A DNA stretch of 64,000 bases, from NCBI GenBank assembly GCA_964035545.1, contig OZ037768.1, forward strand, positions 21,857,319-21,921,318, given 5' to 3'. Position numbers and translations under genes: made by a program. This DNA comes from Bugula neritina (taxonomy: Eukaryota > Animalia > Bryozoa). The notes beneath the pieces are model-generated. The model was not told the DNA's origin and ran no database searches. It saw nothing but the letters and a program-made list of their open reading frames with translations. Below are positions 45,601 through 51,015 of the stretch, piece after piece (position 1 is the stretch's first letter; each line of letters starts with the position of its first letter).

Positions 45601-48600
45601 ACCCTGACGGAGTTGCTCCCAACTTCCGGTTTGATGTTGGGTCTACGATTGAGAAATCTTTACAGGTCAGTTAGTGTGGTTTTAGAAGTTTGTTTAGATG
45701 CAGCACGTACATTGAGGTCATTGGGTGCAGTACATTATTATTCAAACTCAAACCTCCTGCTGCATTAAGCAATTCCCGGGTTACCAAACTATTTGTAGAT
45801 CAAGGATATGAAGTTATGGCAAAACTATTGTTCTGTGATTAAAAGGGAAGACAATTCTAAAATATATAGCCATGAATGTTGTAATAAAAAAATTTTCTGT
45901 TATACTAAATATTCATAGATGTCGCAGTAATATATACATTATTCTGGAAGCTTGCCAAATTGTTTTTTAAATTGAAGAAAAGTTATTATATTAAAAGTCT
46001 GTCATTATGAAGGGAAGTTGAAAGAAATGAAGAAACACCGGTTAGTTGGAATATAAATAATATATTGAATCTGTTTCCTGCAGACGAAGATAATAGCTGA
46101 GCTGGAGGAAGCAGCCCGGCCATTGATAGTCAACAACAAGGCTTGTGTGGAAAAATGTATCTACGCCTTGCGTAACTTTATTGAAGACTTGGAGAGCAAA
46201 AATATTTTAGAGACAGACTCTGCTAGACATCAGGTAGGACTTGAAGTCATCATGACTTGACTAATAAGTTGTCGTTGGCAAGAAAACCTGTCACCTAGTA
46301 TCCGTAGGAGTAAAATTCGGAATATACATTTAGTGAGTATTTGGTATCACAAAAGACTGAGTTGGATGCATTTCAAAGCTAAACAATTCAATATAGAAAA
46401 ATCGCACGGTTTACTAGACATATTATTTGCAGAAGTGTAATCCCAATATACCTTTCATACTTCAAATTTAATGAATATATCTTGATTATATTCAGCATCT
46501 TTTTGGCTGATCATTCGACTGACTGAATTGCTCGACTACTGACCTAATTACTATAAAGTTGACCTAATTACTTGAAGGTGGACCTAATTATTTGAAAGTT
46601 GACCTAATTTCTCTTATGAACACTTGACATTAACTGAATTGATTAGGTCATAGAAAGCAGCTGGTATATTTTTTATACAAGAAGGTGAACACATTCACTC
46701 TGCTTGTATTCTATGAAATTTGTCATTTCCATGGTGCTTGCAGGCTGTAGCATACAATAAGAACATTCCTTACCCTCGTACCTGCGGCGCCACCTTCTGC
46801 ACCGACCGTCTGGTGACCTTTCAGCGACCTGTTCACTCGGCCGTCCAGTACACACCAAGGTCACTGAATGAGAAGCCTTCCACACACACCCCCTATAGCT
46901 CTAAAACCCGGTCTAACTTCTACGGACCTTCGATCTCAAGGTCACCCAAGGACAGTGTTTTCTCAACGTACTACAAAAGACATCGGGCTAAGAAGAAGGA
47001 GAAGAGTGGGCCGATCTGCGTGTACAACGTGGCGTCCCTTCTACCAGTGAATAAGCACCTGGCGGCTCAGTATAAGATAACTCCTAGTGAAGCGTCTTGT
47101 AGTCACAATGCTGAGGTGAGACTTGTTATTGTTATTTTATATGTATAATGTATATAATGTATATATAATTGTTATTATTATTAACATTATATATATATGT
47201 GTGTGCGTGCAAATATATAATATTTATATATAAGTCACTAGCTATTTCATACGTGTTATAAATATAAGGAGTAGAAGTTGTATACTTATGTTCGACATGG
47301 AGGCCAACATTGAAGTCTGTACTAAAAACTGGTATGCATGACTCAGCTAATCCTGACCCTCCCTTTGTGTTCAGGTTGCAGAGAAACAGGGTAGAAGAGA
47401 TCTGCACCAGATCTGGAAGATTCTAGGAGAGTTTATGGATAAGCGGTTGGAGGCCAACTGTGAGGATATTGAGAGTGGCGCCCCCTGGGCAACCTTGCCC
47501 TTTGGTAGACCCATGGTAGAGTCAATGTGAGTCCCTAGAGTTACTTGACTGTCTAAGTACTATGTATTGTCTACTATATGCTATGTGTTGTATACTATAT
47601 GCTATGTGTTGTATACTATATGCTATGTAATGTATGCTATATACTATGTATTGTATGCAATATGCTATGTATTGTATGCAATATGCTATGTGTTGTATAC
47701 TATATGCTATGTATTGTATACTATATGCTATATACTGTATACTATATACTGTATACCATGTATTAGGCACTGTATAAGATGCATATAGTCTACTCAATAC
47801 AGTATACTATAAGGAATAGTTTATATTCTCTGTTACAGAATGCAGCATTACGCCACTATAGGAGACTTCCAGACGTTAGCCATGATAGTCTGCATGTTTC
47901 CTGCCCCCCTTCCGTCCCCTTTGGTAGAGAAACCCTCGCACCACTTGCAATTACCGCTATTACAGCGCAGCTCCTCTACTATGAAGATGGGCACATCTCC
48001 TAGCAATTCCATTCTAAGTCGGTCCCCTCCTGAACGCCCCTTCCTTACGGTAGGTCCACCTTCTAGGATCATATGCTATCAGTATGATTTATTCATAGTA
48101 AAGTGTTATGAAGCTAAACTGAAGTGATTTGTTGAATAAAATATTAGTTGTAAAATAAAGAAGTGTTTGTTAAATTGTAATATTTCATGCTATGAATATT
48201 CACATTATGCTAATGCATGCTGGGCGTATTACAGTGCATTAGCCCTCTTGTTACTCTCACATAACTCTCATAACGATATAACTGGTGCTTTTTCGTCCAT
48301 TCTTTAGATTTTCTGCAGCCTCCCACCCTGCCAAAAGGTCAAGTTTAACTTCTCAGGTGTTGAGTTAATTATACTGCATTGTGGCCATCTTTAGTTCACA
48401 TTTACTATAGCAGTACTACTGTTCAGGGAATGATAACTCACAAACAGTTTATTGATAGAGTATATTATAATATAGACTGGAGATAAATTCACTCTTTAAT
48501 GTTTTGTTACTGTTTCCTACTACTCGGTGAATCAGCATGTTCTCACAACTCCAACAGTTCTCTTGCACTCTCTGAACCTATTTGTTCCACACAAACTGGC

Positions 48601-51015
48601 TGTTACTCATTCTTCATCTGTTATAGTTGAGGGTAATTTCTGCCAATTTTGCTGTGAATCAGCAGAGTTTGTTCTCTTTTCTTTTTGCACGCTTCTATTG
48701 GTAGCAGGTGGAGGCTACAGAGTTTGTGATATTTTTGAAAATAGTTATTTCTAAGAAACTTCAGGCCCTCTAATGCAATCTTTAAATATGGTTATAAAAT
48801 ATCTTTGGATATTTAAAAGAATATGAAGCATTCTGTTGAATATTAAATTAAGGTGTGTTTTTAATTTTAACAGTGAAATTTCCACCTACTTTTGGCAATT
48901 GATACATATAAATTTAACTAGTACAGCATGTGTAGGCGTAATTGTTTTACTAGCGTAACCATGGTGATGCTATGAATGTGTTATAACATGGAGAGGAATA
49001 GTAAACATTGGTACTTGGTTTTCATCATGGTGCAGTTCTAAACAGAGTTGGCGAAATGCTTGCAGAAAAATGGTTATTTTTCAGTCATTACTGTAGATTA
49101 CAGTTGAATTTTGTGTTAGAAAAACAGTCTGATATAATTTCTGTCAGCACAGAAATTTGTGTCTGCACACAGATTTCTGTGAAGGGCCATGTTGTTGGCA
49201 GTCACACGGAAGACATGAATGTCAGGCATTTAGATACTATTTTATAGATTGATACAGATGTGCCCAATGGTTGGAATAGTAAGTCATACTCTAACTCTCT
49301 ATCTGCTAACACCTCGCTCTACGCTAGCCTACCAAACTCTTGTCTATACAATTAACCGTAGCTCTTGGGCTATCGTAGTTTGCATGTTGGCTTCCCTGTC
49401 TATCCTGTAACATGGTGATGGGTCCGTCACTAAATTGCTCTGTCTTTACGTTTATAATGTGTCCGGCGGGTGTCCAGCTGGCTCTACGTCTGCTAGGATT
49501 TATCACCCGCTACTCGCACCTTTACTCTTGTTTCGAGCGTCTTTCAAGCGCTACTCTAACTTTCCAGTGCCCCTCCAACTCCCACTATCTTAGGTTGTGG
49601 TTTAACAAATTATTTTCTCTGTAGTCCAAACATCCACATACAATTCATGCCAGCGATACCAAGTTTCTAGAACAGTGGATGAAAGTGAAGAAGAGTAAGT
49701 AGGGTTGATGTGCTTTAACTCTAGAAGTGACTTCTTACCGTTAATCATTGTCGTCGTATCAATTAGTTTTCTCGGCAGGGTTGTAAGACGGCTAGTAATT
49801 TCAATGTAGAGAAATGTGGTAGAGCGGGTGAAGCAGACAGTGTGGTGTGGCGAGTAAAGTAACTGTTGTATATGTTGAAACTCGTGTGTTATGTTGTGTC
49901 GTGTTTCAACTATTCCCAATAATAAACCCTTCAACTCACAGCTCCTTGATCTGCTGCTAACTCCTGCTAGAATGTTCTGCACGTCTGCTGGTCTCAGTCT
50001 TGTAAATCTTTCTAGATATACTTTAAAGTTTCAATTTGCTTGTAACAATAGCTATGTAGTTAGACTGCTATTCAATGAATCGAGCACTAAGGATAAACGT
50101 GCACTATATTTTGTTTAGAATTCCAATACTTGCTTCTATACTATGGTTTCCTTTTGAAAAAAAATTGATGTGTGTAGATTTGTGAGCAAAGTCTAAAAAA
50201 ATATTTTGTAATGTTCGTATGAACGTGAGCTTGCTGTTTCACCTTCCTCTTTCAGTATGATCATGTGACAGTTCCCACTGCTATTCAGTGTCTTGTCTTG
50301 TCTTGAATGTCTTGCTGACCCTGTAGGTTCCCGGAGAAGGGCAGACAGTCACAATGAGTACATAGAGCGCAACAGCATACAGCAGGCAGATAGCGAGCAA
50401 GCAGAGCTGCAGAAACACTTGTCAGCTATCTCGTAAGTTTTACAAATTCAAGCTCGTGTGCCGTTTACAGTTGGAGAAAGTATATTGGAGTGGTAGATTG
50501 AAATAGTTCAATAGCCGTAGTTATTAGCAACACCCACTTTTTATTGTAGTACTTTTTGTTCTGTGACTTACTCATTCTATGTCATTCTATGATATACTCA
50601 TTCTATGTTATTTTATTCCATTTTTAGAGTTCTCAACCCTAAGCATCACTTCTTATACAATTTCTATAAAACGACATACGCAGACTTACTATACAGATGG
50701 AGAATGTTGAACGAGAGGGAAATTCTCATGAAAACCATGACTCCAGCCGACGATTATACTAGCAATGCTATAGCAATCCGGTGTAATACTTGTGATGCGG
50801 AGACCAACAAGTCCTGGTGTCATACCTGCAGCCCCAATAACAAGCCCGCCCTTCAGTGTGCGTTGTGTCGTTCAAGTGTGCGAGGGCCAGCCACTTTGTG
50901 CATCAACTGCCGTCATGGCGGACACTTGCAGCATTTCCGTAGTTGGTTTGAGACGGAGAGTGAGTGTCCCACAGGCTGCGGGTGTCCTTGTCTAGAGTTT
51001 AATGCCGTGGAATAG
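33630..51015 (+). CDS. WDR59: GATOR2 complex subunit WDR59 (Sea3): WD40 repeats, RWD domain, C-terminal zinc finger/RING
   Basis: Exons 33630-34142, 36218-36650, 41708-41787, 42619-42744, 43758-43853, 44506-44574 (tentative), 45426-45665, 46084-46233, 46744-47115, 47375-47526, 47839-48049, one phase 0-to-1 exon from 48308-49694 (e.g. 49625-49694), 50327-50432, 50628-51015. Motifs [122 protein letters not shown]. Confidence 0.93.
39716..39834. mobile_element. Diverged copy of the small hairpin MITE seen at 19103-19228
   Basis: Shares CAGC(A)CCGAGTTG, TTTGGGG(G)TCTGG(G/A)GTT and TGCACTCAGTCACC(A)CCAACT with the CSK-intron element. Confidence 0.6.
40436..40668. repeat. Compound (TA)n/(CA)n/(TG)n microsatellite
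   Basis: Direct reading. Confidence 0.97.
41600..41690. repeat. 47-bp tandem duplication just upstream of the WDR59 exon 3 acceptor
   Basis: GTTTATTACTGCTATATGCATATATTACTATACAGTAACACTGTC occurs twice. Confidence 0.85.
42864..43692. repeat. 21-bp minisatellite (AGTATAACTACAGTGTAATAT)n, about 39 units, with a 294-bp higher-order duplication
   Basis: The variant pair AGTACAATT recurs at 42993 and 43287 (14 units apart); the array decays into the acceptor at 43757. Confidence 0.95.
46541..46610. repeat. 20-bp tandem repeat (GACCTAATTA...AAGTT), about 3.5 copies
   Basis: Direct reading. Confidence 0.75.
47558..47760. repeat. 21-bp minisatellite (TATATGCTATGTGTTGTATAC), about 9 copies, filling most of a 312-bp WDR59 intron
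   Basis: Direct reading; starts about 30 nt after the donor at 47527. Confidence 0.9.

Follow-up and report, generated by a model that had tools for sequence, protein, structure and literature searches.

An old, frame-enforced pair of mutually exclusive exons is probable in the WDR59 linker of the bryozoan Bugula neritina, beside an intronic RNA complementarity that relatives do not share

The stretch of Bugula neritina DNA analysed here, a window of 64,000 nucleotides (nt) from contig OZ037768.1 of assembly GCA_964035545.1, contains on its plus strand, between about 33.6 and 51 kb, a gene that its sequence identifies as the WDR59 gene of this bryozoan, coding for a subunit of GATOR2. Our analysis indicates, with a probability of roughly 0.7, that the C-terminal linker of the encoded protein is specified by an old pair of mutually exclusive exons, a microexon of 31 nt and an exon of 70 nt, and that the reading frame enforces the choice of exactly one of them. 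GATOR2, of which WDR59 is a core part, relays amino-acid signals to mTORC1, and we know of no described function of the linker that precedes the RING domain of WDR59. A literature search combining 'WDR59' and 'mutually exclusive exons' found no paper. A swap at one conserved motif across three invertebrate phyla would likely point to a regulated contact or modification site and would offer an experimental handle.

A domain search of the window exons detected the RING-like zinc finger zf-RING_16 (PF17120, E = 1.4e-13) at the C-terminus, WD40 matches in two N-terminal exons and a weak RWD match (E = 0.005). The closest full-length protein matches carry the name WDR59. In addition, a 309-residue B. 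neritina protein with the database name WDR59 / 'WDR59/RTC1-like RING zinc finger domain-containing protein' is 97% identical across the last exon. A word search with the 70-residue upstream exon returned one short genomic fragment of a relative, which has the same exon boundary at its end. The features discussed below are collected in Table 1.

Table 1 Features of the WDR59 linker region. Positions are those of the window; joints are given as donor/acceptor. D, S1 and S2 denote the putative docking site and the two putative selector sites.
Feature	Position	Strand	Remarks
Constitutive exon 5' of the pair	47839..48049	+	Ends in phase 0 (...SPPERPFLT); joints 47526/47839 and 48049/49248; in both annotated proteins
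Candidate 49-nt exon	48308..48356	+	No RNA junction; contigs cross it unspliced
31-nt microexon, short variant	49248..49278	+	Spliced on both sides in RNA contigs; in both annotated proteins
'Selector 1' (S1)	49302..49322	+	24 nt past the microexon donor; pairs with D
Candidate 28-nt exon	49379..49406	+	No RNA junction; weak sites
'Selector 2' (S2, 49488-49511) and rest of the inverted-repeat left arm	49488..49547	+	Pairs with D
70-nt alternative exon, canonical variant	49625..49694	+	Acceptor joint in run X2; conserved WDR59 linker motif
Inverted-repeat right arm with 'docking site' D (49819-49838)	49781..49838	+	Imperfect repeat around the 70-nt exon
Constitutive exon 3' of the pair	50327..50432	+	Phase-1 start with GT; joint 49278/50327; same layout in Owenia
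Last coding exon, RING-like zinc finger and stop codon	50628..51015	+	PF17120; 97% identity to annotated protein

Frames were checked exon by exon. The upstream constitutive exon ends in phase 0 and the downstream one is open only if its two leading bases complete a codon, so that the coding length between them must be 1 mod 3. This constraint, which a preliminary description of the window had drawn from the phases at 48049 and 50327, is confirmed by the exon translations. Both the 31-nt and the 70-nt exon begin in phase 0, and the length of each is 1 mod 3. If both are used, two bases are carried over and a stop follows nine codons into the next exon, as had been predicted for the joining of these two exons; if neither is used, a stop follows twelve codons into it. 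Read-through of the microexon donor leads to a stop after 25 codons, and read-through of the 70-nt donor after 2 codons. Since both exons are 1 mod 3 and one carried base is needed, only transcripts with exactly one of them reach the RING-like zinc finger.

Transcripts with both exons, with neither or with a read-through donor would be lost to nonsense-mediated decay or would encode a truncated protein. Such policing by the reading frame, together with a presumed decay of the wrong forms, would be the best-supported way of enforcing exclusivity at this locus. Mechanisms of exon exclusivity, including the combination of reading frame and nonsense-mediated decay, have been reviewed (PMC6071210). 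The Bugula pair resembles known frame-enforced cases in that its two exons are not multiples of three and that the use of both or neither leads to an early stop. It differs in that decay of the wrong forms is presumed here, with neither the double-inclusion joint (49278/49625) nor the double-skip joint (48049/50327) among the joints listed for the contigs of four RNA runs. Steric hindrance and U2/U12 incompatibility were rejected as causes of exclusivity, as the intron between the two exons is 346 nt long and the splice sites are ordinary GT..AG sites (donors all GTAAGT or GTAGGT, acceptors all AG).

Transcript evidence comes from RNA contigs of four runs from four studies, which were aligned to positions 46600-51600. 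The runs have no RNA label on record; thirteen runs hold about 9% of the sampled words, which is roughly the expectation for exons only. For comparison between genomes we used a sibling B. neritina assembly (GCA_010799875.2), which is 92% identical to the window at aligned positions and 88% when gaps are counted. The further B. neritina contigs L003-L008 were identical to this sibling assembly and added no lineage.

The microexon is the form found in most RNA contigs, with depths similar to those of the flanking exons. Its upstream joint (48049/49248) is a listed joint in runs X6 and X11 and appears as loose ends in X2, while its downstream joint (49278/50327) is present in X2, X6 and X11, that is, in three of the four runs. 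The following joint, 50432/50630 with two letters between in run X6, was read as an acceptor at 50628. Both annotated proteins of the sibling assembly (KAF6022653.1 and KAF6026881.1) carry the microexon, which differs between the two genomes by one synonymous change, and the Bugula annotation to date consists of the microexon form alone, without the canonical linker motif. A distant bryozoan relative (contig L009) shares 45% identity with Bugula in the RING exon. An IDTD match at positions 151-162 of this contig was considered as a microexon orthologue and set aside as unproven, since it has no AG acceptor or fitting frame. One metagenome contig (L005, JGI 3300003318) lacks 46 nt and 33 nt relative to the sibling assembly and is otherwise identical to it. 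The two gaps are orthologous to 48298-48343, at the candidate exon at 48308, and to 49264-49296, which covers the 3' half of the microexon and its donor. They are probably an assembly artefact because they have no GT..AG ends.

The 70-nt exon is characterised by strong conservation. Its peptide matches the motif (S)PYHT[IV]HxSDTxLxGW, which WDR59 carries in animals such as Artemia, Nymphon and Owenia. This motif lies 182-236 residues from the C-terminus in 12 WDR59 proteins, mostly at 182-190, and the 70-nt exon would place it about 184 residues from the end of the Bugula protein. The three changes between window and sibling assembly in this exon are all synonymous third-position changes, and both splice sites are intact. 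The distant relative contains an orthologous exon of 73 nt (L009:486-558) with the peptide YFSHHTIHSSDRLSKEWKQLLRKS; it is preceded by a pyrimidine tract and AG, followed by GT, is likewise 1 mod 3 and is succeeded by a phase-1 exon. In the RNA contigs, the joint 48049/49625 at the 70-nt acceptor is seen in X2 only, at a depth of 20.4, about one eighth of the depth of the microexon form. An X11 contig spans 49251-49696 at a depth of 67 with zero depth beyond 49696. It starts 30 letters before the split of the spliced and unspliced paths of the microexon and ends at the 70-nt donor plus GT, the two letters that are common to the intron and the next exon. This end would mark a used 70-nt donor, and we infer from it that the donor is used in Bugula.

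Several points weigh against an exclusive pair in Bugula. The joint 49694/50327 is shown by no contig among the joints listed for the four runs, and the X2 contig that begins at the 70-nt acceptor (start 49624) continues through the donor to 49788, with flow on to 49894. Use of the complete 70-nt exon in Bugula is thus deduced from the end of one X11 contig together with conservation. Contigs rather than reads were available, in which rare forms and ratios are invisible and absences are weak evidence. The two exons are of unlike length and have in common only a DT..(G)W pattern that is too short to test, whereas mutually exclusive exons that arose by tandem duplication resemble each other in both length and sequence (PMC6071210). 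Lastly, the differences between the two genomes at the intronic pairing sites considered below are unpolarised, as two lineages were compared without an outgroup.

An alternative that would accommodate part of this is that the Bugula microexon is effectively constitutive and the 70-nt exon a decaying relic or 'poison' element, of which the acceptor is sometimes used and the donor is not. The X2 contig and the unlisted 49694/50327 joint speak for it, as do the stop two codons past the 70-nt donor and the good coverage of the intron after the microexon in all four runs. Transcripts entering the 70-nt exon would then end at ...KKSK without the RING, or be degraded. We regard both the relic itself and this fate of its transcripts as unlikely: the sibling assembly, with synonymous changes only, and the 45%-identical relative both retain the exon together with its phase, splice sites and peptide motif. 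Moreover, the X11 contig halts exactly where a used donor with a GT-starting target exon would make it halt, and contigs drop rare junctions.

In each of the four runs, RNA contigs cover 49279-50014 at 5-25% of the exon depth, which exceeds the coverage of the preceding intron by a factor ranging from two to many. The intron stretch 49279-49624 has a depth of 12-67, compared to 0-13 in the intron upstream of the microexon. The intron after the microexon may be slowly spliced ('detained'). Further upstream, in the intron that ends before the 5' constitutive exon, positions 47549-47785 form a degenerate tandem repeat at which X11 contigs show back-joints and many loose ends.

The exclusive pair looks old on sequence comparison, with the bryozoan swap matching annotated isoforms of an annelid and a snail. 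Two proteins of the annelid Owenia fusiformis (CAH1780353.1 and CAH1780354.1) differ only here, with TDSHYLTIHSSGVNSTWNI in one and QPYNPYHTIHPSDTSLKGWDY in the other. The corresponding tandem exons, 58 and 64 nt long and clearly alike, both begin in phase 0, are 1 mod 3 and use GTAAGT donors; GT opens the exon after them. In the snail Littorina saxatilis, the eight aligned isoforms (X1-X8, e.g. XP_070188755.1) have either NYNPYHTVSSVTGLLKGLRT or NTEANFTYYQTGSSTDSGWSLL, never both and never neither. The isoforms of both species are database annotations only. They agree with Bugula in the gene, in the place in the protein and in presenting two PYHTIH...GW versions one at a time. In contrast, the first Bugula exon is just 31 nt long and its YxTIH half has been lost, and the two Bugula versions differ much more from each other. 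The microexon comes first in gene order, like the first of the two Owenia exons, and resembles the end of that exon (GVNSTWNI against DVPNGWNS), although this resemblance is too short to test.

Two arthropods show a further variant. Isoforms X1 and X2 of Artemia franciscana and of Phymastichus coffea differ by a 10-residue cassette (LLHRGGWSFK and KLFIGKWWLK, respectively) directly 5' of the PYHTIH motif, so that the same linker is alternatively spliced in another way. This resembles the Bugula case in affecting the same linker beside the same motif, but it is a 30-nt in-frame segment just upstream of the motif that is included or skipped, and not a swap of the motif itself. One 974-residue WDR59 (P0150, vertebrate-like by eye) is without YHTIH and has ...DPGLNAGGWNIG... 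at the aligned place. The canonical version is less close to this segment than are the Bugula microexon and the first exon of Owenia.

The preliminary description had proposed a larger set of four AG..GT segments as candidate exons. All four are present in the sequence, but as exons only the 31-nt and 70-nt segments are backed by RNA contigs. It is extremely unlikely, in our view, that 48308-48356, 49379-49406 or both join the pair as further alternative exons, making a cluster of three or four. Each of these two segments is 1 mod 3 and bounded by AG..GT, and 48296-48446, the island around the first, is unusually conserved, with 3 differences in 151 nt between window and sibling assembly compared to an intron average of about 8-12% divergence, and one synonymous change within 48308-48356. 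However, no joint at 48308, 48319 or 49379 occurs in the contigs of the four runs, which cross both candidates unspliced. Neither candidate peptide shows similarity to the WDR59 motif, and 49379-49406 combines weak sites with two changes, of which one is non-synonymous in the required frame. No stable fold was found in the island at 48290-48450 (z = +0.85). The sole X6 contig in the intron upstream of the microexon covers 48212-48445.

As a mechanism of exclusivity it had been proposed that D pairs in turn with S1 and S2 and that their competition decides which exon is used, as in insect 14-3-3zeta, Mhc and Dscam1. The complementarity of D to two upstream intronic sites was borne out in the window genome. 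Pairing energies with D are -29.8 kcal/mol for S1 and -28.1 kcal/mol for S2, and in their extended form the two pairings come to -40.8 and -46.7 kcal/mol, respectively. In dinucleotide shuffles of D, the best site gave -20.6 +/- 2.2 and the second -18.8 +/- 1.5 kcal/mol, and none of 300 shuffles reached either observed value. An unbiased scan of all 20-mers 3' of the last candidate exon also selects D, which is stronger than the best docking site in any of nine other 2.3-kb stretches of the window. A transposon origin of the complementary sites, raised beforehand as a possible source, was rejected: 49230-49900 is single-copy, matching only itself across the complete 216-Mb genome. The S1:D helix is present in the minimum-energy fold predicted for 49279-49900; the fold of this region is no better than that of shuffled sequence (z = -0.59). 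A search for RNA families and tRNAs in 47500-51500 returned no tRNA and a chance-level NEAT1_2 match only (E = 0.59, far under threshold).

Comparison with relatives argues against a competition between S1 and S2 for D. In the sibling assembly, D carries G49826A and G49828C, S2 carries C49510A and T49511G, and S1 carries C49322T. Pairing energies there are -19.3 (S1) and -12.0 (S2) kcal/mol, at or under the shuffle background. Of the core pairs that changed, two of three are broken for S1 and all four for S2. The extended stem that encloses the 70-nt exon has nine altered pairs, every one of them broken, and none of the differences between window and sibling assembly in these pairings is compensatory. 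The extended stems, at z = -2.7 and -3.3 in the window, fall to background in the sibling assembly (+0.5 and -1.1). Over the D stretch, identity between the two genomes is 87%, equal to the intron average, and no outstanding docking window was found in the sibling genome or in the distant relative. Furthermore, S1 and S2 both lie 5' and D lies 3' of the 70-nt exon; consequently both pairings would loop out the same exon and offer no choice between the two. We therefore consider the proposed switch very unlikely, despite the strength of the pairings in the window genome, the predicted S1:D helix and the position of S1 just past the microexon donor, where pairing with D would draw this donor closer to the downstream acceptor. 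Of the proposed swap of the linker before the RING, the exclusive use of two of the four candidate exons is supported, and the RNA-structure switch is not.

We conclude that the docking and selector sites are, as judged from the two genomes, probably parts of an imperfect inverted repeat (49488-49547 against 49781-49838) that drifts neutrally. The complementary stretches around the 70-nt exon would then be specific to one lineage and dispensable for the splicing pattern, which most likely exists without the pairing, because the junction-bearing RNA contigs diverge from the window about as much as the sibling assembly does. The number of letters at which they depart from the window is about the same, and several indels are common to both, although the two are not identical. 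The inverted repeat may still add a modest, lineage-specific bias toward skipping of the 70-nt exon. More generally, docking and selector sites that pair strongly in a single genome can turn out to be a drifting inverted repeat, and one close relative suffices to tell.

Docking-site/selector clusters are known from insects, namely Dscam1 exon 6 as well as 14-3-3zeta, Mhc and MRP1, with a downstream docking site in the latter three (PMC6071210, PMC4691838). The Bugula window resembles them in having one downstream site that is complementary to two upstream sites, of which one can pair at a time. It differs from them in that the pairings are unconserved in a close and a distant relative and show no compensatory change, that there is not one selector per exon, and that two dissimilar exons take the place of an array of similar ones. 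In the Owenia introns, no clear layout of one docking site and two selectors was seen; no further test was made. The Owenia WDR59 intron after the second alternative exon contains a large inverted repeat (L011 42007-42990) with 253-nt arms that are 88% complementary, which is probably a foldback element. Inside it, at 42614-42640, lies a weak third match that resembles the motif and has an in-frame stop.

A wider reading would make the exclusive pair common to at least bryozoans, annelids and molluscs, where swapping the linker motif PYHTIHxSDTxLxGW before the RING would provide two regulated forms of GATOR2; in the Bugula lineage of the window, a young long-range stem looping out the canonical exon would favour the microexon form as the default. 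We consider this combination quite unlikely as a whole.

Outside the gene, 3' of WDR59, positions 57108-59771 contain two long open frames, one of 318 and one of 369 residues, which by eye resemble a reverse-transcriptase fragment and a gag-like retroelement protein.

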